Shown here: one piece after another, positions 5,701 through 45,214 of the stretch
Numbering within the stretch: the stretch's first letter is position 1
Layout of the letters: every line of letters begins with the position of its first letter
Source: Parasitella parasitica NRRL 2501
Taxonomy: Eukaryota; Fungi; Mucoromycota
DNA: 64,000 nucleotides
Direction: 5' to 3'
Assembly (NCBI GenBank): GCA_025201805.1
Contig: MU619364.1
Span: 15,119 to 79,118, forward strand
Position numbers and translations under genes: made by a program
Notes under the pieces: generated by a model
Seen by the model: only the letters and a program-made list of their open reading frames with translations
Database searches by the model: none
What the model was told of the DNA's origin: nothing

Positions 5701-5916
5701 ACAATGCAGGAGCTTGATTTCATTTTCACTCAACGCTGGAATGGAACTGTTATTCCTGTCACTGCTACAGAGAATGAAAATATTGTAGGCGAAGCTGTTG
5801 CCCTGAAGCCGGGTTTCTACTTTTTGAAATGGAAGGCTTTGAAACTGATGTCAGATGCGTCTCGTCCAGAGAGTTGGTTTACAAAGGTGTCTCCACCCAT
5901 TTTGATTAAAAATTAA
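2799..5916 (+). CDS. Secreted subtilisin-like serine protease (signal peptide, propeptide, S8, PA, Fn3-like); tandem paralog of the upstream gene
   Basis: Hydrophobic N-terminus MKIPLLSTAMLLCVAG; IIDSG, GHGTHVAG (~3664), SGTSMAAP; VQRGKCTF; QGAGLI; same C-terminal layout as gene 1. Confidence 0.92.
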
Positions 5917-5962
5917 TGTCTTTGAGGAATAAAATGTCTTAATTGCAAAACTTTACATTTTT

Positions 5963-6378
5963 AAGATGAGTGCAGTATTTTTGATTGAAGAGGGACATGG
6001 GGGATGTTCTCAATGAAAATGGCGGTCCTGAGTCCTTGGGAGTACATTGTTGGATCAGAATGAGATTGTTGTTGAAACAATTGCGACTCACACTGATTAC
6101 TTGGAAAACTTTGCTTCCAGCGAATCTTTGGCTTGCCCAATGCAAATTGAAAAGCCAAAAGATGATGACATTCATATGAAGGAGGCAAGCATAAAATGGG
6201 ATTATGTTCGGTATACGATCCAGGATAAGGTTTGATTTTTCGATCTGAAGATTGAAAAGTGCAGCCAAGCAGTTGAGCATTCACATATGAAATGCACTGT
6301 TTATAACATTATTATGAGAAATAAATGCAATCTTCCATTAAAAAGAGCAGATTTTTCATTCTGTCGAGAGGAATACAG
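5963..6378 (+). pseudogene. Left arm of element A: internally deleted IS630/Tc1 transposase 5' fragment
   Basis: HTH-region peptide followed by KCNLPLKRADF/HSVERN, alignable to ITLKKLEKIPAARN of the intact transposase at 31278. Confidence 0.7.
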
Positions 6379-7994
6379 TAGTCCAGTAAAGTCTTTGACA
6401 GAGACGATGAAACACATCAAGTAAAAGAAAGAGTTGTGGCATGTCCATGATCAGCTTTGATAAATCGCGAATGGAGTTTGGAACCGTGATAGCAGCGAGC
6501 TCATAAAACATGTACAAACCAGCGAATGGAAGCGTCATAACGTAAAATGAGACCGTGTTTCCCACAACTTAGGGGCCAAGTACACCATCCATGCCATATT
6601 CATCAAGAGCATTCTTGCAAAATATCGCCACACGCATGAGGTCACTGCAGAGCATCAAGTTGCTGTCGGATTCCACCGTCGGTTTGGCCTCCCTGTATGC
6701 GCTGCTTACCATCCAATGCACGCCTCGGGAACGCGTTATAGTAATTTCGGGACACACGTTCGTCAGCAGGTCCTTTTTCTTCACCTCCATAGTGCATTCA
6801 TCAAGCCAGCGGAAGAAGACGCCTTGAGATGGATTGTTAAAGAGGCCACACAAGAAAGGTTCCACAAAGCGGGTGTTTTGCTCCATTTCTCGAAGCCCTC
6901 TGTTAAGAGCAGCGTCAGGCAATTTGTGAATCAAATTAATAATAGCATCTCTAATTTGACGCTGCCGCTCATCCAGTTTTAACAACATAAGCTGAAAAAT
7001 GGCAGCATCACGATCGATCAGATGCTTGTCCAAATTGTCCAAGATTTCCACCATGCTTTTCATCAATTCCAATGGCATGGAGTCTCGTGTAAGCTTGTAC
7101 TTGGACTGTATGCAACGCACCGTGGTGACAAGACCCGCGTCAGTGAAAAAAGGGGCCAGGTCATATGGGTAATGATGAGGGGATAAAAGTAGAATGTGCG
7201 ACGCTACCAGGGCAAGATGGACGTGATTTCCCAAGGTGTATTTCCACAGACGTCCAGGGATGGATATTTGCATATCATGAAATGCTTGGGAAACGTCGAA
7301 TTCGTCTGCCATCAAATGTCCGTCTGAATTCAGAGGATACACGGTGTATCCAGAACCACCCAGTTTTTCCTTCTCAAACTGGCTGTTATATCAGTAACAT
7401 GGCGAGGTCTCACGTCAAGATCTCAGATCAGTCCCAGGGTCTTACAGTAAATCATGGGTAGTCATGATTTACATTATGCAGTTAGACAGTAGAAACCTAG
7501 TGTAGTTCTTTGGCAGATTTATTTTATCAGACTTTTGACATATCACTGGCCACCAATGTCATCATCGTTAGGTTTTTGTCTCTTCACAGGCACAGTTTTG
7601 GCGGGAGCGATTTTTCGGTGGACGCGGAATGAGTTGGCAATGTGCTTTTGGACAATGCAGCAGGAAGAATGGCTGAGTGCTTTTCATACAAATGCTCCTT
7701 TAAATCGTTGAGATTTTTACGATAAAATCGACAGACTGGACATTCATGATAGTATTCCACAACGTCAGGAAGCGTTTTATTTGCTTTAGCAGTGATGTAG
7801 ACAATTTCATTGGTGTCTTGGCGTTTTGGCCTGTTGGAGGTAGCAGGAAAATCGAAGCTGTGTTGTGTTTCAAAGTGTGAACGATATCGTTGCATAGAAG
7901 AAGCAGTGTGATTGCAACCATCTTCTAAACAAACAAGCTTATAAAAGCATACAAGCTTCATGAGAAGGAAAAAGGATGAAAAAGAGGCATGCAA
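6356..7994 (-). pseudogene. Cargo of element A: probable N-terminal pair of C2H2 zinc fingers plus C-terminal PD-(D/E)xK-like nuclease domain, disrupted
   Basis: CLEDGC..HFETQH and CPVC..HLYEKH (7584-7994); FFRW..CPEITI..REAK..DLMRVAIFCKNALD..LG(stop)VVGNTVSFY..GLYMFYEL (6356-7342), collinear with the element B cargo. In-frame TAA at ~6569; the link between the ZnF and nuclease parts is inferred. Confidence 0.65.
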
Positions 7995-7999
7995 AAATC

Positions 8000-8103
8000 T
8001 TAGCCATTGCCTAACAAATGTTAATCATTACCTAACAAATGTTAGCCATTACTTTACAATGTTAGCCATTGCCTAACAAATGCTAGCCACTGCCTAATAA
8101 TTG
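8000..8103. repeat. Five-copy ~21-bp tandem repeat (consensus TTAGCCATTGCCTAACAAATG)
   Basis: Units at 8000, 8021, 8042, 8062 and 8083, read directly. Confidence 0.9.
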
Positions 8104-8199
8104 TCATTTCGCAGTTTCTGAAAAAAAGTTCAAGTAAATGATAAAAGTCATGGTGCTTGTGATAATATATATTAGAGAAAAAGAGGAATAGCTTTGTTT

Positions 8200-9420
8200 C
8201 ATTTATAATGAACATGCAAAGAGAATGTATTATGAATTAAGCTACGGTATCTACATCATATCTTCAAGTTCAAGGTAGTCTTCAAAAATGGTTATGACTA
8301 TCTATTGACAAACATCTGTAAATTTGTCTGTCGACTTTGGATCAAAAACCTTTAATTGGATTTAGGAACAGAGAGAAAGGTTGAAGATGAACACATTTAT
8401 GTCCTTAATTTTTATACAAAAAAAACAGTTTTCCTGAATGGGTGTGTTATCCTGGAGGCAGATTGTTTCATTTTCTCTGGCATTTTCTGATACCCTCAGT
8501 TGATCCGGCATCTTCTAATGTGGAAGGTCTTTTCAGACAAGTCCCAAACTGGCTTCTCTATATCCAGTTGTACATTAGAGCAGCTAGTCAAACCTGTGCC
8601 ATCTTTTCCATAATATCGGAATGGTTCTACAAAAAGTGTGTGTCTTTGCAAAGCCAGGTGTTTAGATTTTAGGCGCTTAATTTTTTGGTCCCCGCAAACT
8701 TCAGTGTGTTATCAGAAAGAAGACAAAAACTGTAAGGAAATAATGTTAAGCGATTTTGAACACAAAAACAAATAATTCAAAGTAATACATTAGACTATAA
8801 GGCACCTTTTGATTATACATTTGCATAGTTTTGAGCAAGTTTTTGTACTTTTTAAGTTGATATCAGATGAAGGTGGCGAGTTTTCGGAAAAATATTTCAC
8901 AGAATCGGAGCGTGGGACCTTCAGACTAGGTACAGACATACAAGTAATATCATTAGAAAGCCAAGAGGCACAAAATTTAGATGAACTAGGTTGCAAATGT
9001 TTTTTTCTTGAGTTGGGTAAGCTATGGCTTCTCAAAGCTAATGCTTTCTTAGAAAAAAAAAAACCCTCTTTTCTTCGATCGCGGAGATTAAACGCGTCCA
9101 AAATCAGGAAGCAAAAATTCTTTCAGAAACTCCATTTGGACAATTCGAAAACAAAATTACTCCTTTGAGGCAAGATATCATCTTCCGATACTATGTATAC
9201 CACGGCTGTCAGTTAATGATCATAGATGTGTTTTTGGGCGCTCTACAAGCTGGTATCATTTTCATGAATCCCGTATGCTTATGGAAGAAATTCTGTCGAG
9301 AAAATCTCAAAAGCAGATTAAGAGGTAAAAGTCAATATTTTGCTTAGTCAGAGCGCATTTTTAGTCTTTCAGATCAAGGAATGGCCTTGTACGATCATTT
9401 TCCTCCAATATATACCATAG
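8200..9420 (-). pseudogene. Degenerate coding-like segment inside element A, family unassigned
   Basis: Fragmented minus-strand frames with intron-like gaps; weak resemblance to the N-terminal part of the B cargo (W..QNI, DFW). Confidence 0.25.
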
Positions 9421-10057
9421 TAAAAAGTTGCATTTTTGGGGTCAAAATCGAGGATAATGCACTTTCAATGATTTTGGATGTGTAGACACAAGGAAAAAAT
9501 TGAAAAAATTTGTCATTTTTGCATCGAAAAAAAAATCATGCTCAAATTGCACCAAAATCATATATAATATAGTCTTTTGCCAATGTATACTATTTCTGGT
9601 ATTTTCAGGGCACTTTTGATTATGAAAATCAACAAAAAAAATGGCACAAAAAGCTGAAGTTCTTGCTTTTAAGCTGTAAAAAATATCTGTCTGAAGATGG
9701 TATCAAGTCAACATCAATTCTAGTACATGACACAGCTCTATAAAGTAAGCTTTTTGGTACCACAAGTATACCTTTCTTCATAGTAATATGATGAAACAGG
9801 TGTGGCCCATCGAGTTGAAAGCAGAAGAGGAATAATTTACAAGTCGCTAATTGCTAGTGACAGAGAAGCCATATACCATTGTTGCTTATAGTAATGCTCA
9901 ATGTCAGTTCAAGAGTTCATTTTTTTGTAATCCTAATGTTGAACATGTAAAAATAGAAAGTAAAATAGAGGTTAGGATTGAGGTTGAAGGTAATTTTATT
10001 AACAAAAGTTAAGCCTCATAATAAGCTTCTGGTAGGTTCCAGGTTCCAGGCACTGTA

Positions 10058-10150
10058 CTGTAGAGTATCAAATTCTGAATAGCGGATAACACTCGCTATA
10101 CCAAACAAATTTTTGTATACCAACCTGTCCGTTATAACGAGTCCCGACTG
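10058..10150. mobile_element. Possible short pogo/Tigger-like MITE remnant
   Basis: Right end CGTTATAACGAGTCCCGACTG|TA resembles pogo-type TIRs; left end TA|CTGTAG is degenerate. Confidence 0.35.
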
Positions 10151-10799
10151 TAAATTCTCTCTTTGATATTGGATAAACTGACTTGACTCAACAGATGTAA
10201 CATAAAATGATAATGTAAAGTTATAAAAATAGAAATTCCCATTTGCTTGAATATGCTATGATTTTTGAAAAGACACATAATTAAATAATTGGTTTAAACC
10301 TAGATTCAGGGATAAACTGCCATTTTGTAAATGCAGCTTGATACTTTTAAACCTTTTTTAGTTTAAATGCCTATGCAGCTCTATGGACTTGTCTAAATAT
10401 TTGAGCTTATTTAGACGTCTAATTTCTAACGGGTATATTTGGAATAATTTATCAACATTTAAACATTATGGAATTCAAACAATTTTGTATTCTGGTTAAT
10501 TGATGATTGTTCAGTTTCAGGTTCTAAAGTACATGTCGTTAGTGTCGATAAAGAGTTTTCATTGCATGAAAAATGAGATAATAAAAAACCCAAATAATCA
10601 TTCATTTAAAAATACCTATTACTCCTGCACAATGGCTGTTTGATCAAAAATAAAATAATTAGAACGCCGCAATTTCGCATATCATTATAAAATGTTCTCT
10701 ATTCTTGGGCATTTTTAATCTAAAATAGAAATCTAAAAATGTGCTTGTATTTAATACTTGTCCCTGCTTGAAATATTCTTAGGGGGACATTTCTCTTCT

Positions 10800-11572
10800 C
10801 TCAGAGACATCTCAGTTTTCATCAGAAATAAAAAGTTTGTTATCAGAAATCCTTCCGTAATTCCTTTTGATAATGTGTCTTCCTGCCACTGCCCAAACTG
10901 TTCTATTGGATTAAGCTCAGGAGAATAGGTAGGAAGATACGCTTTATTTATATCCTCGATACTCAACATACTTCTTTATGTTTTCATGTGTGTGAATGGG
11001 TGTATTATCCATGAACTACGCAGTGACCTTTCATATGTGAATGTTTACTCTTTTCAGTGAGAGTTGTTTTAAAGAAACTGATGTAGTGGCCTGTCTTTTC
11101 AATGGAAGGCTGCATTTACTTTTCATAATAATGTTATAAACAGTGCATTTCGTATGTGAATGCTCAACTGCTTGGCTGCACTTTTTAATCTTCAGATCGA
11201 AAAATCAAACCTTATCCTGGATCGTATACCGAACATAATCCCATTTTATGCTTGCCTCCTTCATATGAATGTCATCATCTTTTGGCTTTTCAATTTGCAT
11301 TGGGCAAGCCAAAGATTCGCTGGAAGCAAAGTTTTCCAAGTAATCAGTGTGAGTCGCAATTGTTTCAACAACGATCTCATTCTGATCCAACAATGTACTC
11401 CCAAGGACTCAGGACCGCCATTTTCATTGAGAACATCCCCCATGTCCCTCTTCAATCAAAAATACTGCACCGATCTTCGCTATTTGGAATCACTGTGAAC
11501 ACCGTCATCTTTAAATTTACAGGCAATTTATATTAGTCGAACTGGGGTGTATCGAGTTGATCTTCAAACATG
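10800..11572 (-). pseudogene. Right side of element A: internally deleted IS630/Tc1 transposase
   Basis: N-terminal arm sequence, then TGHYISFFKTTL..MKGH..DNTPIH..YLPTYSPELNPIEQF (DDE_3 catalytic D and E motifs) with frameshifts. Confidence 0.85.
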
Positions 11573-29171: not shown

Positions 29172-31084
29172 TTTTCCAGCGAAAAAACAAAAGAGAGAGA
29201 GAGAGAGAGAGAGTGGAAAAGAAAGGAAGAACGTTTTACTTGAAGATCATAGTTGACTTTGAAGGAAGCCCCCTTTTATACACTGCAGCGTATATAAAAG
29301 GTATGTGGTACATAAACAACCTAATTATAGTAAACTGCTATAAACATCAGGGAATAAGAAAAGAGAATCTCGGGATTGCACCCATTTTCACTAAGAATAG
29401 ATACATGGTGATTTACCCTTTGGTTTTTCTTCTCCAAGAACCGGCTAGTAAAGAACTGGAAATTCCGAGTTGGGATTATATTGCATATATATACGCCATA
29501 ACAACAACAAATAGAGACGTAAAACGTTTATGATGGAATCGTCGTCTACCTGTTTCAACAAGGAAATGTCGCCAGCAGTATTACTTTGTGTCCATATGTT
29601 TACGACACACATGGACATGCAATTGCATTAATAAAATACATATAATATTCAGAAGCTATATTTGAAGAAATAATCCTCCAGATGGAGACTAGTGCGCCCC
29701 ATGGCCTTCAAATTCAGGTTTTGATCTGTCATGTATTGCAGCCTTATGGTTTTCATTGTGGCTTTGATTCTATTTGTTTTAGTAACAAAGCTATCAGACT
29801 TGCGGCTCCTTCCTTGCCGTGTTCTTGGAATAAAGACAGGCGAGATCATCAACTGACAAAGGTTACTCAGAGAACAAAAATTGCCACATTTCACTCAAAA
29901 GAAGGCGTACTAAAAATCATTGACTAGTTTAGAAAACGTAAGAATTGAAACATACTGCATACAGATCTTGTAGAGTACGGTTACTACAGAAGCACAAACA
30001 TTTGCTTACTTTTGCTCTCCTTCTATACTTCTTTGGAGCGTCTCTTTATCCATCTGGATTTATAAGTAGATTGTGAAGATTTTTTGTCTTGCAAAATGGC
30101 AAATTTTTTCGTCTTTTGAAAATAAAAGCATCAGTATAAGCTGGTGTACAATGCAGGCTAGAGTGTAGGCAACAGTGTGAAAGTGTGCAATTACTAGTTT
30201 GGATTTTCTGGTCTCTGCAAAAGTTTAGCCACAAAATACAACGGTTACCTAAGCGAAGGTTGAAGAAGTGGTACCTTTGGAAGCCGAGGCAAAGGCAGCA
30301 AGTATTGTATTAAGCACAACGTACATCCAAATAATGCGGTTTTTTCTCCCGCGTCAATAAAGGTAACAGTGAAAACCATGAACTGAGATTTGTCTAGAAT
30401 CAAAGACATAATAGAAATAATCAAGTTGTAGACCTCAAACGTAAGCTCAGTTGATGCAGTGGACGACACGCAAGGTAACCTACGCCCAAGCACCTTTTTG
30501 CAGAAAACGACAACGTGAGATGCTTAATTGTAGACAGGGTCAATATCAGTAATTGCACCTAGTGTGTATGCTGGATCTTAAGCTCACTTCAAGTAATTTA
30601 GGATAATGAGAATACACAATCACACTTGACATTGACGATGTCAGTTTTATATGTAATGTTGTGTTTTACTTTAAAAGATAGAATCAGCTTTTAGCTTTTA
30701 CGAAAATACGTATATACGTATATGAATTAGGAAAAAAAAAAAAAAAAAAGGCGCCTATGTAGATAAATATTGGCATGATGTGCTCTAAACCCAAATAGTT
30801 TTTCGCCATTTCTCTGTTGATCCTGAATTGCAGCTGTATGGTATCATAATGTTTCCTTGTCCCAGCCACGCTTACAAAGTAGATGTGAAACTACTCAAGT
30901 AGCATTGGACGTATAAATTTTCTAAATATTCTCTTTCAATTCTTTTGAGGACGATGTTTTTGACGCAACATTTATGATGAATGAATCATGCTGCATTCAT
31001 TGATGCCAGCATTATTGGTGCTCCAAGAATTAAGAAGTGGGGTTTTTTGACTGTGTTTGTTGGATGTACTGTTTTTTGAATATG

Positions 31085-31186
31085 AGTTTGCGTTGAGATA
31101 AAAATTTATTTGCGCTGACATTAAAAGAATATTTACGTCAAGGTAAAAATAGTTTTGCGTTGCTTAGTAATAAATTTTGCGCCAAG
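31085..31186. repeat. Subterminal TTTGCG(T/C) direct repeats (x4), probable transposase binding sites; mirrored at 37531-37632
   Basis: tttgcgttg, tttgcgctg, ttttgcgttg and ttttgcgcc within ~120 bp of the terminus. Confidence 0.55.
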
Positions 31187-31277
31187 AAATTAGAAAAAAA
31201 ATATATAAAATAACCTAAAATATCGTAAAGGTTTCAACTCCTTTTTTCTTTTATTTAGTTTGAATATTAGAACAAAC

Positions 31278-32669
31278 ATGCAAAGCGTTAGTAAATTTAT
31301 TACTAATAGTGAAATTATTTCAGATAACGATATGGACACTTCATCTGACGATTATATGGAAGATGACGAGCAAGAAGAAATGGAAATTGAGCATTTCAGT
31401 TTGAGCGAAGAATGGATGGAGAAAATAAGACGCATTGGGAATGATTCTCTATCATATGTACGTGAATATATGGAAGTAGATTTAATAGAGGAAGAGAATG
31501 AAGATTTTTTTGGAGATGCTTTTCTCTTCGCAGAGTCAATGCCATTGAGAAAAAGACATACGGCTTTGAATGTTAAAACAAGAGGTTCTTACAGAAAATA
31601 TACTCCTAAACAAGTTGAGAAACTCTTCGACTTAATAATCGAAGAAGGATTCACGACAAAAGCTGCAGCTTTAGCCACTGGGATTAATGTACGCACTGCC
31701 CAGAATTACGTTAAAACTTATAACAATGATCCTGAGAGACGACTTCCAGGATCTTATTCTAAACCTCATGGAAGACCTCGTAATAAGTTGACTGAGGAGC
31801 ATTCTAAATTTCTAGTTGACTATATCGAAAAGAATACCACTGCTATATTAGATGAGTTAAAGTTAAAACTTTGTGAGAAATTTGAGGGTTTAAAAATCTC
31901 TATTTCTGCCATCCACAAACATTTAGTACATAAGCATAAAATTACGTTAAAGAAACTTGAAAAAATACCAGCAGCAAGAAATTCTGACAGAGTAATAGCA
32001 TTACGAAAAGCGATTGTTGAACAATATAAGAGTGATGCAGATATGGATTTTTCTAAGAATTGTGTTTTTATCGATGAAGCAGGTTTCAATTTGCATACGC
32101 AAAGAAACCACGGCCGTTCATTAAAAGGCACACCTGCAAAGGGCACTGTACCAACTGGAAAAGGTGTAACATTTACAATTTTAGGTGCAATTTCTCAAGC
32201 AGGTATCATAAATATTGGAGTTAAAAAACCAGAATCAGCTTCTTCTAAAAAAAGAAGGGCAGATGGTAAGGAAGTAAAAATAAATGGCAAAGTTGGGACA
32301 AGAACTGAGCACTTTTTGGCTTATCTAAACAACGTAATGGATACACTGGATAAAAATAATATAAAGGGGCAGTATATTGTTTTGGATAATGCACCTATTC
32401 ATAAGCCAAAAGTAATCAAAGCATTGATCGAAGAACGAGGACATAAGTGCATATATTTGCCACCATATTCTCCTTTCTTGAATCCAATCGAGGAATTTTG
32501 GTCAAAAGTAAAGGCTGGTGTTAGAAGAACACCATTGACGACAGATGATCGTCTCACAGATCGTATATGTGAAGCGGCTGGAAAAGTAACAAAAAAAGAT
32601 TGTGAAGGATGGATTAAGCATTCAATATCATTTTTCCAGAAGTGTTTGAATGAGGAAAGAAATCTTTAA
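31278..32669 (+). CDS. IS630/Tc1-family DD34E transposase (left arm, intact, ~463 aa)
   Basis: HTH (AAALATGINVRTAQNYV), VFIDEAGF, IVLDNAPIH, YLPPYSPFLNPIEEFW; 34 residues between second D and E. Confidence 0.95.
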   Translation: MQSVSKFITNSEIISDNDMDTSSDDYMEDDEQEEMEIEHFSLSEEWMEKIRRIGNDSLSYVREYMEVDLIEEENEDFFGDAFLFAESMPLRKRHTALNVKTRGSYRKYTPKQVEKLFDLIIEEGFTTKAAALATGINVRTAQNYVKTYNNDPERRLPGSYSKPHGRPRNKLTEEHSKFLVDYIEKNTTAILDELKLKLCEKFEGLKISISAIHKHLVHKHKITLKKLEKIPAARNSDRVIALRKAIVEQYKSDADMDFSKNCVFIDEAGFNLHTQRNHGRSLKGTPAKGTVPTGKGVTFTILGAISQAGIINIGVKKPESASSKKRRADGKEVKINGKVGTRTEHFLAYLNNVMDTLDKNNIKGQYIVLDNAPIHKPKVIKALIEERGHKCIYLPPYSPFLNPIEEFWSKVKAGVRRTPLTTDDRLTDRICEAAGKVTKKDCEGWIKHSISFFQKCLNEERNL

Positions 32670-32736
32670 AATAGTCAGTAGGAGTGCAGCTTTCAACAGA
32701 CGCACTCTGAATGCTCACTGAGATTTGAACAACATG

Positions 32737-32807
<71 letters not shown>

Positions 32808-32964
32808 AAAGGAAAAAAGAAAAACGATAAAAGCAAGAAGAAAAGTTAATATTGAAATTAAAGGATAAAAAAGCCCATCATTTAATAACATAAATGCAAT
32901 ACATATGAATAAATACTGTACAACCATTAATATCTTAAAGCTTAACATAAATATATCTACAGTA

Positions 32965-34638
32965 TTAAAATCGAACTGGGCAACTTCGATTACGGTCCTT
33001 TGTTGGGTCTGTCAAATCAATCAAATCAGTAAGTTTTACTGATGTTCGGCGTCTTTGTTGCATAATACTTGGTATATCAGACTTTTTACAGAACTTCCAA
33101 AAGACATGGCATACAAGTAGCAAGATATTCAAGTTTTTAAGGTTTGTGAAAACTGGAAGTTGTGCCAAAGAGGAAGGGAATTCAAGGTGGCCGACCTCAT
33201 ACATAACATAAAGTCCGTCATGGTCCAGTCTTGTTAGAAAAAATGTAATGGCAAATCCTATATTTACAAAATTAGCTACTCTCAAACACAAATCTATGGG
33301 TATAGTAGACATAAAAAAATTAAATTACCGTGGATTTGAAATGAAATTGAAGACTCCAGAAGGTGCAAGTCAATAGCTTCCTTGCTAAAACAAGCGACTC
33401 TCGCCAAGTCCATACATAACGCCGCTTTGTTACATGTTGGTTCCGCAATTTTAACTTCACCGTGTCCAAGGGTAGCACTAAACTTTAGTTGGTCAACAAT
33501 AGAAACTACAGCATCTGGTCTCAAAGGCAAACTGGGGCTAATAACTTTGTCTAGCCACCTTAACAATACTGATCTTTCTGAATTAGCAAGAACACAAGAC
33601 AACAACGAGTCGAAATAAGTATTCCAGAGCTCAGTTTCACTAATGGCGCTCACATCATTTATGGAATTCTTGGGCAACTTTTGAATCCTAAGGCGAAGAT
33701 AAGAAGGTGAGAAGGTGAGAAGGTGAGAAAGGGAGAATGGTATTCAACGAGAAGAAACACTTACAACATAGCGAGACCCACTATGACTCTCTGTTTTTCA
33801 TATGGCATCTTTGATGCAATTTGTAATAATCCTGCAGTAGTTGACAGTACTGATGTGATTCCGGAGTCTAGGTTCATAATGTTTTCAACGATGCTCATAA
33901 ATTCTGCTGGAGTAAACTTCATATCTGGAATTCAATTTTCTTCTGGAATTCATCATGTATTTTGGCTAACAAAGAATCAGTAAAGACTGAACGCATCAAG
34001 TGACTGTACTGAAGGGGTTGTAGCAAGAGGATATTATTTAATGACAATAATTCCTGAACATGTTCTTCCATCTTGAGAGTCTGGTTGCCCTGTATTATAC
34101 GTTTCACTTCGTTTTTAAAGATTCGGAAACAATCTTGAATATCATTCAATGGCTCTTGTTGTACATGTTCGTGATGTGGAGGTTCTTGTGCCGGTTCATC
34201 GTACAGGAGTGTCCTTGCTTGTTCATCATTCAAATTGACTTCGCTTGCTGCTGCATCAGGTATAATTTCTCCAATTCTTGCTTGAGTCTGTGTTGACAGT
34301 TCTTCATCACCATTTCGTAATTCATTAGCTTCCTGTTCAGCAACATCTCCGACATAGTCAGCGCAGATTCCATGTATTCTATCTCTTACAATATTTCGTC
34401 GTTTCTCCTTCCAGTAATTTTTGTAATCAGATGATAATTTGAATGCTGTAAATTCTCGTGTCAATTGTTGGACTTTCTCATTATTAACCAGATATTTCTG
34501 TAAGATAGTGTTATATCTGCGATTAGCTTTTCGGCTGTCGGTAAAATTATATTCGTCAAAGAAGGCTTTTGCTGTTAAGGTTTGAATATTCTCTTTGCAC
34601 CATTTTGCATCATCAGGAATCTTACGTGGCATTTTCAT
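32965..34638 (-). CDS. Cargo of element B: ~510-aa protein with C-terminal PD-(D/E)xK-like nuclease domain; 3 exons, one apparent frameshift near 33930
   Basis: Introns 33764-33688 and 33328-33258 join in frame; LRW..LRPDAVV..GHGEVK..DLARVACFSKEAID..FQIHG|FAITFF..GLYVMYEVG..FPSSL. A frameshift is needed between KKIE and IPDMKF. Confidence 0.75.
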
Positions 34639-34892
34639 GTAAAAAAGACAAAAAAAAAACGCTGTTACTAAATGAGAATGCGGTCATTTACTCCGATTTC
34701 GGTCATTTAATGGTTTGGGTGGGAAAGTACTGATGACAAAGTGGCTTCGCGACATTTATCTCTGACGGCTTCAAAAAAAAAAATTGTGCTTGTTTTTTTC
34801 TTTTTGTTTTTGTAAGTGCCAATCATGAAGATGCCCTGTGGCCAGTAGTTTGTGATTGTGATAGAATTGTATATTTCTTCTTGAATCATAAA

Positions 34893-35096
34893 GCGAAAAA
34901 CCCCGGATACTGTCTCCCCTGCGATGTTTACTATTTTGCAAATGTCCCTGGAGATGGGTTGTTCATGTTTCTTGAATGCGTTGCAGCTAGTAGTCTGTGA
35001 TTCCTTAATAGAAATATGTATTCACTGGCGAACCCTCCCGATATCATCTCTCTTGCGACATTCACTATATTGCGAATGTCCCCAGAGATGAGTTTC
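34893..35096 (+). ncRNA. Two diverged copies of a ~60-nt stem-loop with compensatory substitutions (candidate structured RNA) in the core of element B
   Basis: Copy1 TGTCTCC..GATGTTT..AAATGTC..GGAGATG; copy2 CATCTCT..GACATTC..GAATGTC..AGAGATG; stem differences preserve pairing, with G-U wobbles on the + strand. Confidence 0.45.
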
Positions 35097-35281
35097 AAGA
35101 AGGCACTTACGCATTACTTTTAACTGTGAAGCTTTAAAATTTACTTCAGTAATTTTAAGTCAAGAAGATTCAAAAACAACGCTAAGTATTATCCTGATAA
35201 CATTAACACACTGTTATTCTAAACGTAATTTAAAACTAATTATATTTTTTTTGAACTTTATAAGTATATTATTCAGCCAAT

Positions 35282-35752
35282 ATGTAACAAAGCGGCGTTA
35301 TGTATGGACTTGGCGAGAGTCGCTTGTTTTAGCAAGGAAGCTATTGACTTGCACCTTCTGGAGTCTTCAATTTCATTTCAAATCCACGGTAATTTAATTT
35401 TTTTATGTCTACTATACCCATAGATTTGTGTTTGAGAGTAGCTAATTTTGTAAATATAGGATTTGCCATTACATTTTTTCTAACAAGACTGGACCATGAC
35501 GGACTTTATGTTATGTATGAGGTCGGCCACCTTGAATTCCCTTCCTCTTTGGCACAACTTCCAGTTTTCACAAACCTTAAAAACTTGAATATCTTGCTAC
35601 TTGTATGCCATGTCTTTTGGAAGTTCTGTAAAAAGTCTGATATACCAAGTATTATGCAACAAAGACGCCGAACATCAGTAAAACTTACTGATTTGATTGA
35701 TTTGACAGACCCAACAAAGGACCGTAATCGAAGTTGCCCAGTTCGATTTTAA
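35282..35752 (+). pseudogene. Duplicated 3' fragment of the element B cargo inside the right arm (lacks the PD and EVK codons)
   Basis: Exact reverse complement of 32965-33435. Confidence 0.85.
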
Positions 35753-35909
35753 TACTGTAGATATATTTATGTTAAGCTTTAAGATATTAATGGTTGTACA
35801 GTATTTATTCATATGTATTGCATTTATGTTATTAAATGATGGGCTTTTTTATCCTTTAATTTCAATATTAACTTTTCTTCTTGCTTTTATCGTTTTTCTT
35901 TTTTCCTTT

Positions 35910-35980
<71 letters not shown>

Positions 35981-36047
35981 CATGTTGTTCAAATCTCAGT
36001 GAGCATTCAGAGTGCGTCTGTTGAAAGCTGCACTCCTACTGACTATT

Positions 36048-37439
36048 TTAAAGATTTCTTTCCTCATTCAAACACTTCTGGAAAAATGATATTGAATGCT
36101 TAATCCATCCTTCACAATCTTTTTTTGTTACTTTTCCAGCCGCTTCACATATACGATCTGTGAGACGATCATCTGTCGTCAATGGTGTTCTTCTAACACC
36201 AGCCTTTACTTTTGACCAAAATTCCTCGATTGGATTCAAGAAAGGAGAATATGGTGGCAAATATATGCACTTATGTCCTCGTTCTTCGATCAATGCTTTG
36301 ATTACTTTTGGCTTATGAATAGGTGCATTATCCAAAACAATATACTGCCCCTTTATATTATTTTTATCCAGTGTATCCATTACGTTGTTTAGATAAGCCA
36401 AAAAGTGCTCAGTTCTTGTCCCAACTTTGCCATTTATTTTTACTTCCTTACCATCTGCCCTTCTTTTTTTAGAAGAAGCTGATTCTGGTTTTTTAACTCC
36501 AATATTTATGATACCTGCTTGAGAAATTGCACCTAAAATTGTAAATGTTACACCTTTTCCAGTTGGTACAGTGCCCTTTGCAGGTGTGCCTTTTAATGAA
36601 CGGCCGTGGTTTCTTTGCGTATGCAAATTGAAACCTGCTTCATCGATAAAAACACAATTCTTAGAAAAATCCATATCTGCATCACTCTTATATTGTTCAA
36701 CAATCGCTTTTCGTAATGCTATTACTCTGTCAGAATTTCTTGCTGCTGGTATTTTTTCAAGTTTCTTTAACGTAATTTTATGCTTATGTACTAAATGTTT
36801 GTGGATGGCAGAAATAGAGATTTTTAAACCCTCAAATTTCTCACAAAGTTTTAACTTTAACTCATCTAATATAGCAGTGGTATTCTTTTCGATATAGTCA
36901 ACTAGAAATTTAGAATGCTCCTCAGTCAACTTATTACGAGGTCTTCCATGAGGTTTAGAATAAGATCCTGGAAGTCGTCTCTCAGGATCATTGTTATAAG
37001 TTTTAACGTAATTCTGGGCAGTGCGTACATTAATCCCAGTGGCTAAAGCTGCAGCTTTTGTCGTGAATCCTTCTTCGATTATTAAGTCGAAGAGTTTCTC
37101 AACTTGTTTAGGAGTATATTTTCTGTAAGAACCTCTTGTTTTAACATTCAAAGCCGTATGTCTTTTTCTCAATGGCATTGACTCTGCGAAGAGAAAAGCA
37201 TCTCCAAAAAAATCTTCATTCTCTTCCTCTATTAAATCTACTTCCATATATTCACGTACATATGATAGAGAATCATTCCCAATGCGTCTTATTTTCTCCA
37301 TCCATTCTTCGCTCAAACTGAAATGCTCAATTTCCATTTCTTCTTGCTCGTCATCTTCCATATAATCGTCAGATGAAGTGTCCATATCGTTATCTGAAAT
37401 AATTTCACTATTAGTAATAAATTTACTAACGCTTTGCAT
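36048..37439 (-). CDS. IS630/Tc1-family DD34E transposase (right arm, identical protein)
   Basis: Translation identical to 31278-32669. Confidence 0.95.
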   Translation of the reverse strand: MQSVSKFITNSEIISDNDMDTSSDDYMEDDEQEEMEIEHFSLSEEWMEKIRRIGNDSLSYVREYMEVDLIEEENEDFFGDAFLFAESMPLRKRHTALNVKTRGSYRKYTPKQVEKLFDLIIEEGFTTKAAALATGINVRTAQNYVKTYNNDPERRLPGSYSKPHGRPRNKLTEEHSKFLVDYIEKNTTAILDELKLKLCEKFEGLKISISAIHKHLVHKHKITLKKLEKIPAARNSDRVIALRKAIVEQYKSDADMDFSKNCVFIDEAGFNLHTQRNHGRSLKGTPAKGTVPTGKGVTFTILGAISQAGIINIGVKKPESASSKKRRADGKEVKINGKVGTRTEHFLAYLNNVMDTLDKNNIKGQYIVLDNAPIHKPKVIKALIEERGHKCIYLPPYSPFLNPIEEFWSKVKAGVRRTPLTTDDRLTDRICEAAGKVTKKDCEGWIKHSISFFQKCLNEERNL

Positions 37440-37820
37440 GTTTGTTCTAATATTCAAACTAAATAAAAGAAAAAAGGAGTTGAAACCTTTACGATATTTT
37501 AGGTTATTTTATATATTTTTTTTCTAATTTCTTGGCGCAAAATTTATTACTAAGCAACGCAAAACTATTTTTACCTTGACGTAAATATTCTTTTAATGTC
37601 AGCGCAAATAAATTTTTATCTCAACGCAAACTCATATTCAAAAAACAGTAAATGAAAGGCTGGAGAACGACCCTAGGATTGTCGATGATCCTAATGGTTC
37701 CCAGCACTCTCAAAGGTCTCGCATACCAAGGTTGTGTGTTACATCAAAGACCGCAATGCATTATTACAGTCAAATAATTTGCTTTATTTTTCTATGATTA
37801 GTTGAGCTATGATACAATGG

Positions 37821-39290
37821 TTACTTTTTTGTTGTCGATTCTAAAGGAATAATACAAAAGCGATGAGTATGAATACACAGGTAAATCATTGATCAGGATG
37901 CGTACCAGTATTGCTACTGGCTTTTTTTCTTTTGATGTCGTTGATCAAAGACGTATATTGATCTGCGTACGTCGCCTAATGAACAAACAGCTCGTACCTT
38001 GCATACAACTTGATTTCATGTGATAAAAACACTTACTTTGTGCTCCTCTGAATCGGTAGCCTTTCGCTTGGATTGATTGTGCTTTTCTACATTCTGTGCA
38101 TTTTCTGTAGCTTGCAGCCTTTGCACCAACACCTTTGCGCTCACCGGGTGCCGTGAGTCAGAGTTAGCATTGTATAAATTGACATACTCTTTATGACGCC
38201 AAATCCTCTGTGCCCTACTCCCATGCTCTGGCAAATTAAATGCCTATTTGAGGTAAGTTTTCAACAGATAGTTATGAATATCAAACATTGACTTACTCTC
38301 AGTAGCTCCACTAATTCTCTATCTTTCATGATGGCATACACTTGCTTAATCGGCTTTTTACCCAGATCCACGGTGCTGCTGCGTGTATCGAATTCTGCTG
38401 TTAATCCACTGTCCTCTCATCCAAGGATTACATGATAACACTTACGATTTAAGGGATTTAGGAGCCTTCGTCATGGGCACGGAGAAGGATGATGAATTAA
38501 ATGGAAATAACGAGCTTTCGCTTCTTGAGGCAGCAGGGTATGATTCTGTGGGGCTGCATTTGTCGATATGCACATCAAGCACACTATACCGCATTTTTTT
38601 ACAGCAGATTGGGCATTCTACTATTGATGTGCTTGTTAATTTGGTAGTTGTGTTGGCATTAGATTTCGGAGAAGGAGAGATGGGCAGTTGGGAGGACTGA
38701 AAAGTATCCATGGCGCTTATATTTGATTGATTTGCGCATATTGGATCTTGCAGCGAAGATGCTGTAGACACTGTTTGCAAAGATAAGCGAGACGATCGCC
38801 TTGAGGATGAGGCAGTTGGTATGGTAGATGTGGATGTCGAAGGCCTGAAGTCATCAGTGGACGCAAAATCATCTATAGGGTCATAATCGCAATGCATAAT
38901 TGTGGAATTCTGCTCAGGCGCAGTTGCCATTCTGTCTATTGATATCAGAAACTGTCTAATTTTGCGCTATTAAAACATGTGCACTACTAGATTGCCTCTA
39001 CTCTTTTACCGAGACTCCCGCCATGAATTTGCAATACTATCAATGTCAGCGTTGTGTTTTAGATTGCTCTCGTATGCCGGTTTTCTGCATGTTGGACAGA
39101 TTTGCTCGTTTGAAAGACCTCTGCGGATACAAAGGGCACAAAAGGAATGCAAACAGGTCGTTATTATCAGCGCATCATTGTATATCTCTTTGCAAATTGG
39201 ACATCTGAGCAGTTCATCTAGCGTAGACAATTGAGCAGTTTTGAAGTCGAAAGGGTCGTCGATCCCTTGGTCAAAGTGTGCAGCAGACAT
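37821..39290 (-). CDS. RAD18: Postreplication repair E3 ubiquitin ligase RAD18
   Basis: DDPFDF..LDELLRCPICKE..CLHSFCALCIRR..CPTCR RING; UBZ CPIC..HIDKC; SAP-like region and RHKEYVNLYNANSDS. Confidence 0.9.
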
Positions 39291-39584: not shown

Positions 39585-39594
39585 NNNNNNNNNN
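39585..39594. other. Assembly gap (10 N) after a poly-T run
   Basis: N bases in sequence. Confidence 0.99.
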
Positions 39595-41630: not shown

Positions 41631-44600
41631 AAACATTATTCAATATTAATATGGATCTTTATGTCAAAAGCTCCTAATACATAAGCTCAAACTTGTGCTC
41701 AAACTTGTGCTTTGATTTATAGATATATCATCGACTTTGCTTTGTAAGAGCAAAACCTTGCTGCCCTTTAGATAATATATCGCCAGAGATGAATGGATAA
41801 ATATAGATGCATGAACAGAGGAATTCAAAATGGATGTGAAAGGTGAAAGTATGTAAAAAAAAAAAAAAAAGATATAGGATCGAAGGAAAACCATAGCAAT
41901 CGATATTCAAGTTTGGAGGTGGTACGCATCTTATGCCAATGATATGGGGTATCTGATGGATTAAGACTGAGGACAGAGTGAAAATATGGAAATCACCTTC
42001 AATAAACAGCCAATCCATACGTGCTTTTGTATTCTGTTGCTATTTTGGAGATGTAGCAGAGCATGTATTTTTAATAGCCAATGAATTAAACAAAGTTATA
42101 CTGTACATTATTATCAATGATTTTATTATAGTTTTAGAAACATCCTGGCGTATTAGTACTAGAAACAAGCTATAGAACTATGGCTTTTTATATAAAAGGC
42201 AGAGCAAAAAAATAGTAGATAATCTATTATGAAAGTAAGTTTATCTTACATATTGGTTGAGAAGTATGTAGTCGCATTGGCCTATCGTAGAGGCGAAACA
42301 AACATAACTTTGTTAAAACAGACATACATCAAAATACGACAAAAGAAACTTCATTAGAGGAGCCATTGACTAAAGATCCGCATTATCATAAATATTTCCA
42401 TATTTTACTCAAAAGGCTAAATATGCCCCTATAGACTTAAAGGAGAGAACATCTACCTTATATTAAGTAGTTTCCTGTTTTTGTGTATTATTTAGTAAAT
42501 ATCTCTTATTTATTTTCAAGACTTAAAAGAAAATAGAGCCTTTTTTTTAAATTGAGTTTCTCTTTATTCAAATGGATTACAAGTCATTCGAACACCTGTA
42601 GAAATATGGAGCCAACTTTCATCTGCTTGCTTTTTGAATCCATCTCGCTCTTCTTCTCCTTCTTCTGAATCCAGATTGCTAGTGTCACTATCAATACCTT
42701 CAATATCAGTCATATCAACCAAAGAATCTGACATTTCTACAAATAGCGGAGCTTTGGATCTGGTAGCATCATTACAAGGTGGGGTGTAATATGTATTGAT
42801 ATGATTACTTGGGAGATGAGAGGGTGGCACCATGTTAGTAGCTTTTTCAAATTTCTGAATAATGGAGCTAACTGAATTCCGATTTGATTTTAAAGTATGT
42901 TGTGAATATTGAGTAGTCTCTTCAATATCACTCCGGATCATCAGAAGATTATTGATTTCATCAATAAAACCAGCCATGCTTGCGAGTGATGTAGAGAAAT
43001 GGGACCGAAAGCGAGGAATCACAATGTAAAAACCATTTTGAGTATAGTGGGTGGTAGAACCAATGCCGACGGTACTCGAGATTTGTAAAAACCAAGTTTT
43101 TACATCCCATTGAATATCCTTCAATAATCCCAGATTGTATCCAGACTATCTTTTGATTCCCTGCATAATTTCCACTATCACGTTCATTCTTTTCGTTGAA
43201 CCATACTCATTATTTGTTCTCGAAATTCGGTATAAGTCTGTAGTACATAATTTATCTGTAGCTAGTAACATGGATATAAGTATATGTCTTGTAGTGCTTC
43301 GAAGCGTATTCCCAGTTTCCAGATACGCCTCCGGGATACAGTTCTTCTTTGCCTTTCTTCATACTATCCGAAACTGATTCGCCACATTTGATACGGATCA
43401 GATTGTTGTTTGACGAGAAAATTCTTCTAAATAATGAGTCCCAAATATTTAATATATAATCTTTTTTGACGGCATTGGATCCAATATCAGCTGGTTATTT
43501 TCATAGATGTCAAGACAGGTTGAGAACAGCTTATATACAACTCACGTGGAAGGTGCAAGGTTTGTTTCAGAAAGTAGTTTAGACATATATTGATCGGCCA
43601 TAAGAACGCTATTTGTATTGATACACATTTTGCGCAATAGACTCCATTTTCAGTAAAGGACATATCTAGAGAATAATATATCTAGATAATTGTTTAGTGT
43701 TGTATATTTTCTTTTGAGTAAAGCCCAAACATTTTATCGAATAACAGTGCTTAACCATTATCATTAAAATCAAGAATACAAGACAGATCAAGAGTCATTC
43801 GTTTTTTTTTTGTTGAGGTGAAAGCTTCTTCTTTTCTGTGGATAGTTGATGTAGCTTTAAAGCATTTTGGTAGAAAACATGTTGAGCATTGATTAATCCT
43901 AAGGACTTTGCTTCACTGGTTTGATTGCTGCTGCTGCTGCCACTCTTACTACCTTCTCCTTGATTACTTGGTTCATTTCGTACCGATCTGAGCCCTTTTT
44001 GAAGTAATTCTTCAAGTATAATATTTTTATCAAGTTTGCTGTTCCTCTTCATGGTTTCATATTGTTGTTGGAGCATTTACTTCTTGAGCGTGTCAAACTC
44101 AATTTGATAAAGATCGAATATACCTTCTTTTTTCGTATATTTATGCATTTTCTTTGCGTATGTTTGTACATCAGGCTTTAGCCTACATCTATTAAATACA
44201 GGATCAAAAGCTGTTTTATATTTATCAAATGATTGCATTGCAGTGGCTGATCTTGATTGCTTTTGTTCTTGGTTTAGATCATTGTATATTAAGGATTTGA
44301 ATTCACACCAATACATAATGGGAACATTAGCTAGGATCTTTGGGATCTTGAGAGTAGCTGTTTCTTTTGAAGATATCTTAAAAGTACGAGGTATTCCATG
44401 TGCTTTAGGGGCTTCATCTACCGGATGCAACATATTATGTATGATAGATAGCTAAACGTGTTTCATGCTCTTCAAATAAAATTATCAAAAATATCCAATC
44501 AAATTCGTACTTTACATCCGGATTTTAGAAACTAAAAAGGAGCTATGTATCACCTCTACGATAGGCCAATGCGACTACATACTTCTCAACCAATATGTAA

Positions 44601-45214
44601 GATAAACTTACTTTCATAATAGATTATCTACTATTTCTTGCTCTGCCTTTTATATAAAAAGCCATAGTTCTATAGCTTGTTTCTAGTACTAATACGCCAG
44701 GATATTTCTAAAACTATAATATAATCATTGATAATAATGTACAGTATAACTTTGTTTAATTCATTGGCTATTAAAAATACATGCTCTGCTACATCTCCAA
44801 AATAGCAACAGAATACAAAAGCACGTATGGATTGGCTGTTTATTGAAGGTGATTTCCATATTTTCACTCTGTCCTCAGTCTTAATCCATCAGATACCCCA
44901 TATCATTGGCATAAGATGCGTACCACCTCCAAACTTGAATATCGATTGCTATGGTTTTCCTTCGATCCTATATCTTTTTTTTTTTTTTTTACATACTTTC
45001 ACCTTTCACATCCATTTTGAATTCCTCTGTTCATGCATCTATATTTATCCATTCATCTCTGGCGATATATTATCTAAAGGGCAGCAAGGTTTTGCTCTTA
45101 CAAAGCAAAGTCGATGATATATCTATAAATCAAAGCACAAGTTTGAGCACAAGTTTGAGCTTATGTATTAGGAGCTTTTGACATAAAGATCCATATTAAT
45201 ATTGAATAATGTTT
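41631..45214. mobile_element. Element C: decayed element with ~660-bp inverted arms derived from a canonical Tc1 transposase and nuclease-like cargo
   Basis: 41631-42293 mirrors 44553-45214 with few substitutions; arm encodes KFGGGTHLMPMIWG (41909-41950; Tc1 KHGGGSVMVWG motif) and LRSM*SHWPIVEAK (42257-42298; Tc1 C-terminal SMPxR..V..AKG). Possible degenerate outer tips at TA|CAGTCAATCAGTGC (41420) and GCACCGATTG|TA (45314). Confidence 0.78.
42564..44433 (-). pseudogene. Cargo of element C: disrupted member of the same nuclease-like family
   Basis: Frames broken by stops and frameshifts; YPGGV (degenerate PD, ~43330), TDLYRIS (~43230), FLQI..NGFYIV..FSTSL collinear with B cargo DLARV, FQI, GLYVM, FPSSL. 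Confidence 0.6.

Follow-up and report, generated by a model that had tools for sequence, protein, structure and literature searches.

We analyzed a 64,000-nucleotide (nt) stretch of contig MU619364.1 (hereafter the window, meaning that whole stretch) and found that one of its repeat structures, Element B (6,580 bp, window positions 31069-37648), is best explained as a genuine single-copy derivative of a Tc1/mariner transposon of the DD34E type, a reading to which we give a probability of about 0.7. According to this explanation, the terminal repeats expanded from ~150 nt to 2.37 kb, the arms in their entirety are one duplication, and the unit moves whole. The reading is carried by the anatomy of the arms, by short-read evidence that the inverted structure is real, and by a copy in Thamnidium elegans that shares the inner junctions and lies at an unrelated locus.

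Anatomy of Element B

A repeat search of the window returned two inverted arms, 31064-33440 and 35277-37653, with a spacer of 1836 nt between them. Compared base by base, the arms showed only two mismatches, one at 31066, outside Element B, and one at 33436, so that strict identity extends over 31069-33435 (2367 nt, 0 differences). At the left end the sequence reads TA followed by CTGTTTTTTGAA (31067-31080), and at the right end TTCAAAAAACAG followed by TA (37637-37650). Four TTTGCG-type repeats, at 31087, 31109, 31154 and 31176, lie just inside the terminus and are putative transposase binding sites. No inverted match to the terminal 30 nt was found inside either arm, and 3' of the transposase gene in the arm there is no CGCAAA counterpart to the four TTTGCG repeats (31087-31181). 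An earlier description of this DNA from its letters alone (the sequence-only reading) had reported TA flanks, terminal motifs, identical inward-facing DD34E open reading frames (ORFs) and no inner terminal motif, and all of this is borne out. Its deduction that only the whole 6.6-kb unit has two ends also holds, as neither arm contains an inner end.

Each arm consists of a Tc1 left end, an intact transposase gene, an A-rich microsatellite and, from a second gene (gene X), the last 131 codons together with the 3' untranslated region (UTR). Identity between the arms thus does not stop with the Tc1 part but continues for ~700 nt beyond it, into the 3' UTR and those last 131 codons of X, which upholds the earlier claim that the arms are not two independent Tc1 insertions. 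The arm boundary falls in exon 2 of gene X, directly after its PD...ExK motif, and at the inner junction both sides read TTGG after one mismatch. Together, these comparisons indicate that the arms are one inverted duplication and not two insertions. The features are as follows.

31067-31068, no strand: TA dinucleotide, putative half of a TA target-site duplication (read from the sequence)
31069-33435, plus strand: left arm, probable expanded terminal inverted repeat, 2367 nt (repeat search, base comparison, twofold depth)
31069-31200, plus strand: terminal region, with the CTGTTTTTTGAA terminus and four TTTGCG-type direct repeats
31278-32669, plus strand: transposase gene 1, 463 amino acids (aa), DD34E, intact
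32737-32805, plus strand: A-run of ~70 nt, a length-variable microsatellite, where the relative L063 has its right terminal repeat
32965-34638, minus strand: gene X, nuclease-like, three exons, 1-nt frameshift (spliced RNA contigs)
33441-35276, no strand: unique centre, with the 5' two thirds of gene X and 638 nt upstream of X
34926-35311, plus strand: RNA contig with a high word depth, extending from the centre over the right inner junction (strand deduced from intron orientation in the arm)
35277-35752, plus strand: the final 131 codons of gene X repeated in inverted orientation, without the PD...ExK motif, mirror of 32965-33440
35282-37648, minus strand: right arm, mirror of 31069-33435
35912-35980, plus strand: T-run, mirror of the A-run
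36048-37439, minus strand: transposase gene 2, identical to gene 1
37649-37650, no strand: TA dinucleotide, right flank (read from the sequence)

Both flanks are single-copy intergenic DNA in the genome, and there is therefore no paralogous empty site within it. Small membrane-protein-like ORFs lie in the left flank; in the right flank we noted by eye an ORF with a RING-like CPIC...CxxC motif and ORFs resembling a G-alpha gene. An assembly gap, written as 10 N after a T-run at 39585-39594, is found ~2 kb to the right of Element B. An Rfam search of 30500-38300 matched no family.

The inverted structure in sequencing runs

Long inverted arms without a single difference would also be expected from a chimeric long read or an assembly fold-back, with a single arm mirrored by the assembler. 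We aligned Logan contigs of four runs to window positions 30500-36499. In the independent DNA run X5, depth was 31-34 for the flank contigs and 32.5 for the centre contig (33406-35311), compared with 58-71 for the arm contigs. The centre contig, at single-copy depth, crosses both inner junctions, and the arm terminus is joined to the left flank in one contig and to the reverse-complemented right flank in another. This contig graph is as expected for the order flank-arm-centre-arm-flank with two copies of the arm. Words sampled from the region were present at a fraction of 0.96 in 6 runs from 5 studies. Furthermore, the same inner junction is carried by separate assemblies of three other genera, Thamnidium, Pilaira and Backusella. 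A mirrored single arm is thus barely credible, and we rejected it on the X5 depth and junction contigs: with twofold arm depth and all four junctions present in that run, Element B is not the fold-back product of which the sequence-only reading had warned.

The transposase

The two transposase ORFs are identical, at 463 aa each, and match the Pfam family DDE_3 (8e-29, 100.8 bits, cut-off 28.6); their matches to HTH_32, HTH_29 and HTH_23 were all below the respective cut-offs. The catalytic triad, D266, D370 and E405, was assigned by motif (FIDEAGF, VLDNAP and NPIEEFW) rather than by structure, and its spacing of 34 corresponds to DD34E. With a predicted DDE_3-type transposase, a helix-turn-helix (HTH) region and this triad spacing, Element B can be placed in the DD34E (Tc1) group of Tc1/mariner. 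Inverted termini with TA on both sides were found in Element B and in two relatives, L063 and L073. An exact-protein look-up of the transposase returned no record.

The gene is spanned by an RNA contig (31268-32725, run X7). Compared with seven relatives, the transposase had a ratio of nonsynonymous to synonymous substitution rates (dN/dS) of 0.2-0.7, and values below 1 show past function of the predicted enzyme. It is intact in Element B and in L059 and broken in most other relatives.

Copies in other genomes and the missing right end

In Thamnidium elegans, positions 5101-9733 of locus L073 match the window from 37596 to 32900 with 96.2% identity. The match takes in a complete arm, the centre and the whole of X, and the terminal 103 nt of the other end adjoin it directly. 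Both termini are present with TA on both sides, the terminal repeats measure 542 nt with four differing sites, and the neighbouring genes (a kinase and a homeobox gene) differ from those next to Element B. L073 is the same composite as Element B with one of the transposases deleted, at another locus. The presence of the same inner junctions at this unrelated, TA-flanked locus suggests that Element B has moved as a unit. The claim of the sequence-only reading that the element must move its cargo with it is sustained to that extent; what does not fit is the notion of cargo, since X is not an ordinary host gene and lies partly inside the arms.

The junction 35276/35277 is kept in L072 (Pilaira), L073 (Thamnidium) and L074 (Backusella), which indicates that the inverted duplication arose once. 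In L072, X, the transposase and the centre-right segment are rearranged within a larger nest, and in Rhizopus arrhizus X adjoins a fragment of the Element B transposase. These copies are 94-96% identical to Element B, non-coding sequence included, whereas the host genes beside the relatives' copies are only 68-81% identical in exons to those of the present genome. This difference points to movement as a unit and to horizontal transfer, by which Element B may have spread, judging from an informal comparison that covers three host genes. Near-identical units in several mould genera would lend themselves to the study of how transposons pass horizontally between early-diverging fungi, a group that includes agents of mucormycosis. 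The architecture is common to copies ~4-6% apart in four genera, and the description of Element B as young in the sequence-only reading is therefore not supported.

A copy 97% identical, L063, was found in an assembly labelled Phycomyces blakesleeanus (GCA_040209185.1, JBCLYO010000007.1). Its right terminal repeat begins ~10 nt past the equivalent of 32738, where the A-run starts in Element B, and this right end is missing from both arms of Element B at the same base. The sequence-only reading had held that it would speak against a single unit if the transposase were found elsewhere mainly in short elements with a right terminal repeat of their own, inside 32670-33435. Such an end does exist in L063, but it is absent from both arms, so that a reading as two short elements is not rescued and the unit reading survives. 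L063:5347-11503 is itself a 6.16-kb TA-flanked element with termini 97% identical to those of Element B. It contains two "right" ends, a broken transposase, another Tc1 fragment and a distant X paralogue (30-36% aa identity), and its repeats reach ~280 nt because, besides the 155-nt terminal repeat, the final 90 nt of the transposase region have been duplicated at the opposite end. We interpret L063 as an independent case of cargo and repeat expansion in the same family.

The terminal region of Element B is kept in L059, L063 and L073 and has diverged in L070. The A-run measures ~A70 in Element B, ~A33 in L062 and A5 in L059; we considered that it might be a retroposition tail and rejected this, as such length variation is that of a microsatellite.

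Gene X and its family

Run X7 was taken as an RNA run because its contigs are spliced. These contigs place the introns of gene X at 33257-33327 and 33687-33763 (GT..AG on the minus strand). The gene starts at 34638 and ends at 32965, convergent with the left-arm transposase gene; it is complete only over the left arm and the centre, and its 3' end is duplicated in inverted orientation in the right arm. A frameshift near 33926 divides X into two ORFs, 239 and 269 aa long. DNA runs X5, X8 and X10 have an additional G following position 33926, which would make X one ORF of ~507 aa and is found neither in the window nor in RNA run X7, and the X protein of Thamnidium (P0134) is continuous over the site. 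Gene X is broken in the strain of the window, whereas in a run labelled with a different organism it looks undamaged. In X7, word depth was 1538 at 34926-35311, 2922 for the inner-arm contig and 91 for the unique part of X, although contig depth is a poor measure of expression. The inverted X fragment of the right arm, which the RNA contigs join to sequence lying upstream of X, could code for no more than the C-terminal 125 aa and lacks the catalytic motif.

For searches, X was used exon by exon or as P0134, and exons were joined only to read ORFs. Against 1.84 billion representative proteins, P0134 found at least 600 clusters (50% identity) at E <= 0.001, with full-length members of 450-560 aa, and proteins 72-96% identical to the first exon of X occur in Pilaira, Backusella, Thamnidium, Mucor, Sporodiniella, Cunninghamella and Rhizopus. 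Across 42 diverse X homologues that were aligned, E120, P160-D161, E180-x-K182, D196 and K205 were nearly invariant; in Element B the motif lies in exon 2 and reads RPDAVV...GHGEVK. X thus contains the conserved E ... PD ... (D/E)xK motif of the PD-(D/E)XK superfamily. In an AlphaFold2 model of P0134 (predicted local distance difference test, pLDDT, of 92.3), the motif falls at strands 162-168 and 171-182, with PD opening one strand and ExK closing the next.

Searches with this model by VIA-align gave Z scores that are all "middling" by the scale of the tool. The top two rows were mitoribosomal proteins (8.8 and 7.8), and nucleases included DrdV (6.8), BpuSI (6.4), a type I HsdR fragment (6.3), TT1808 (5.1), BbvCI (5.0) and Hjc resolvases (4.2-4.4). 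Foldseek found the same kinds of nuclease weakly, with a best E-value of 0.04 and no row at E <= 0.001 against PDB, and sequence searches of X against Pfam (E up to 10) and PDB gave chance-level rows only. From motif and fold together, X is likely to be a PD-(D/E)XK nuclease.

X-family loci were found within 5 kb of a Tc1-type transposase in 9 of 42 cases in the genome versus ~1.2 expected under uniform placement, an excess that repeat clustering may inflate. Among these nine are loci in the spacers of at least two further inverted transposase pairs (C46 and C25). The X family is habitually linked to Tc1 elements, and Element B ties this large, unnamed nuclease-like family to mobile DNA.

Two further repeat structures lie in the window. 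Element A (5963-11477), a second long-repeat element, has inverted repeats at 5963-6346 and 11094-11477 (384 nt) and contains an X homologue at ~6389-7327 on the minus strand (G000:C128:21507-22445, E 9e-82 against the family profile, one in-frame stop). No transposase match was seen in Element A, which looks like a non-autonomous carrier of the X-type nuclease-like family. The third inverted-repeat element is located 4 kb to the right of Element B, at 41631-45214, with repeats at 41631-42211 and 44634-45214 (581 nt, 99%).

Origin, mobility and alternative explanations

The genome contains many near-identical inverted pairs of Tc1-type transposases, 4-9 kb apart (C46, C29, C25, C30, C66, C38 and C4), and the paired transposases belong to families only 32-40% alike. 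The measured arms of these other pairs range from 0.5 to >3.2 kb at 99-100% identity, with the lengths for C29 and some others being lower bounds from loci of 3-4 kb. In one pair, each arm holds a complete Tc1 of 1.58 kb that has 104-bp repeats of its own, and in addition 58 and 518 nt of further sequence. The transposase genes of the C38 and C4 pairs face outward, not inward. Taken with L063, the inverted pairs suggest that terminal-repeat expansion recurs.

We propose terminal-repeat expansion for Element B because its arms match the outcome of such a process, with the other pairs and the L063 repeats as further ground. A break near the old right end may have been repaired by invasion of the opposite repeat, copying inward and then rejoining, in Element B at the TTGG common to both sides. 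In arms produced by repair of this kind, the sequence would begin with the terminus, contain no inner end and break off at some arbitrary internal position, as is seen in Element B, and the arms of Element B may accordingly be regarded as expanded terminal repeats. The only usable pair of ends would then be the two outer "left" ends, and transposase from either arm would excise the whole 6.58-kb unit and reinsert it at a TA. Gene conversion would keep the arms identical. Had the arms diverged freely since the Thamnidium split, ~90 differences (about 4%) would be expected in 2367 nt, whereas none was seen. Homogenisation between the arms would be the simplest account of this, and their 100% identity is more likely to reflect homogenisation or recent arrival than recent origin.

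The same outline could have been reached as in a bacterial-style composite, by two separate inverted Tc1 insertions around a resident gene, with subsequent decay of the inner ends and conversion spreading identity into the adjoining DNA. The pair in this genome whose arms each hold a complete Tc1 would fit this route, and loss of inner ends has been modelled for an IS630 composite (PMC11544213). In Element B, however, the loss of the right end falls at one identical base in the two arms, the ~700 nt of common non-Tc1 sequence ends within an exon of X, and the inner junction is a single event common to four genera. The complete modules with inner ends and the independent insertions that characterize bacterial composites were not found in its arms. 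Two insertions, two identical losses and a conversion tract would be needed where one duplication suffices, and we consider this route very unlikely. Alternatively, the core of the structure may have been X itself, as an independent non-autonomous element with the 3' ends of X (~32860-33440 and 35277-35857) as its long repeats, to which truncated Tc1 halves were added, leaving Element B a dead nest. Backusella L074, an X unit with an inverted 3' fragment and no transposase, would fit this proposal, as would the X homologue between the 384-nt repeats of Element A and the finding that only 9 of 42 X loci are near a transposase. Yet the supposed ends of the X unit showed neither a terminal motif nor a TA-bounded end, L074 is asymmetrically truncated with an internal deletion, and the Thamnidium copy ends at Tc1 termini with TA. 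Moreover, L062 has the Tc1 part through 32930 without X and L074 has X from 32860 without Tc1, so that the two modules overlap, as expected for deletion derivatives of one unit. An X core is therefore distinctly unlikely.

Element B could also be an immobile relic, once mobile and now a fixed, inert insertion whose ORFs are intact through recency or arm-to-arm correction. This would be in keeping with its single copy in the genome, the frameshift in X, the presence of the same insertion in all 6 runs holding the locus, and the broken transposases of most relatives. On the other side are two intact ORFs, an RNA contig that spans the gene, intact termini and repeat array, and a dN/dS below 1 as a sign of past function, although none of these points proves present activity. 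We regard a relic as doubtful but deserving of serious weight, and Element B may still be mobile in this genome. The phrase "possibly active" in the sequence-only reading is thus plausible as regards an intact, transcribed transposase under a dN/dS of 0.2-0.7, and is weakened by the single copy, the missing empty site and the frameshifted X.

Several observations weigh against the expansion of terminal repeats in a unit that moves whole. Element B is single-copy in a 32.8-Mb genome, where the family is otherwise represented by short fragments of 77-84% identity, and its gene X is frameshifted in this strain. A search of metagenome contigs for the exact 26-nt pattern joining the flanks found no empty site, and the left flank was absent at 90% likeness in the two relatives compared; with no empty site found, the TA duplication is only putative. 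The same kind of pattern search with a 22-nt pattern by the right inner junction gave no match. In Backusella, L074 has X and the inverted 3' fragment without a transposase. L068:4787-6954 (JGI sample 3300048855) is a solo arm with an intact terminus that ends at the equivalent of 33304. In run X8 (organism C), a contig whose depth is that of a single copy covers 33441-35889, taking in the centre and the inner right arm, and to the left of 33441 it has a different sequence, with X cut exactly at the arm boundary. A one-transposase form could have preceded Element B. Finally, both the expansion mechanism and gene conversion are reconstructed from end states only. The L068 solo arm spans the transposase and the last exon of X and lies between unrelated host genes, and Logan contig L059 (18 samples) stops at the same point as L068.

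A more far-reaching possibility is that Element B represents an undescribed two-gene, Tc1-derived class in which the X nuclease is a working partner of the DDE transposase, spread horizontally among genera of Mucorales, possibly via fusion parasitism if the genome is that of Parasitella. X might introduce breaks, and their repair would then lengthen the terminal repeats and keep them alike; alternatively, it might act as a homing-type or second-strand nuclease. This is speculative and, in our estimation, unlikely.

Comparison with known systems

The usual picture of a eukaryotic cut-and-paste transposon is that of a single gene flanked by short repeats, and the transport of extra genes between two modules that each carry a transposase is considered typical of bacteria. 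The canonical mucoralean Tc1 element, Tc1-MP1, has a length of 1,688 bp, one gene and 141-bp repeats, with homologues in Parasitella, Rhizopus, Mucor and Circinella (PMC9977792). Element B resembles Tc1-MP1 in its DD34E transposase of the DDE_3 type, putative TA target, core repeats of ~140-155 nt and mucoralean hosts. It differs, in a comparison with the published description of Tc1-MP1 only, in its size of 6,580 bp, its 2.37-kb repeats that hold the transposase, the lack of a right end in the arms, and its second gene.

Long terminal repeats are known from Sardine and Thon of Paramecium, which are Tc1/mariner elements with complex repeats of 500-700 bp (PMC3408717), and from Galileo/Foldback of Drosophila, described as a long-repeat DNA transposon (PMC3573991). 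Both resemble Element B in being cut-and-paste elements with long and structurally variable terminal repeats, and differ in that their transposase lies between the repeats, whereas that of Element B lies inside both. Within a limited literature collection, where absence is no proof of novelty, no description turned up of a eukaryotic Tc1/mariner element whose two terminal repeats both contain the transposase.

The first IS630-family composite, Tn630-NC1, was reported only in 2024, in a bacterium, with decay of inner ends as its model (PMC11544213). In Tn5, Tn10 and Tn630-NC1, as in Element B, two inverted transposase modules enclose other DNA, and the limits of the mobile unit are set by the outer ends. 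The bacterial composites consist of two complete insertion sequences with inner ends, whereas the arms of Element B lack inner ends, hold part of the carried gene and derive from one inverted duplication. Element B may thus represent a natural eukaryotic route to the same outcome, in which the repeats engulf the transposase, the inner ends vanish and all that lies inside travels together.

In Tn7, the DDE transposase TnsB works with TnsA, a nuclease of the restriction-endonuclease fold. By analogy, Element B would likewise combine a DDE transposase with a PD-(D/E)XK-fold protein in one mobile element, although Tc1 transposases cut both strands alone, any role of X in transposition would be hypothetical, and X also occurs away from any transposase. 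The engineered "sandwich" vectors of Sleeping Beauty have two inverted Tc1-family units flanking a cargo, with only the outer ends usable, an arrangement that favours the movement of large units. They are laboratory constructs without transposase genes in the arms, whereas Element B is natural and self-encoded, and it may serve as a natural template for large-cargo Tc1 vectors.

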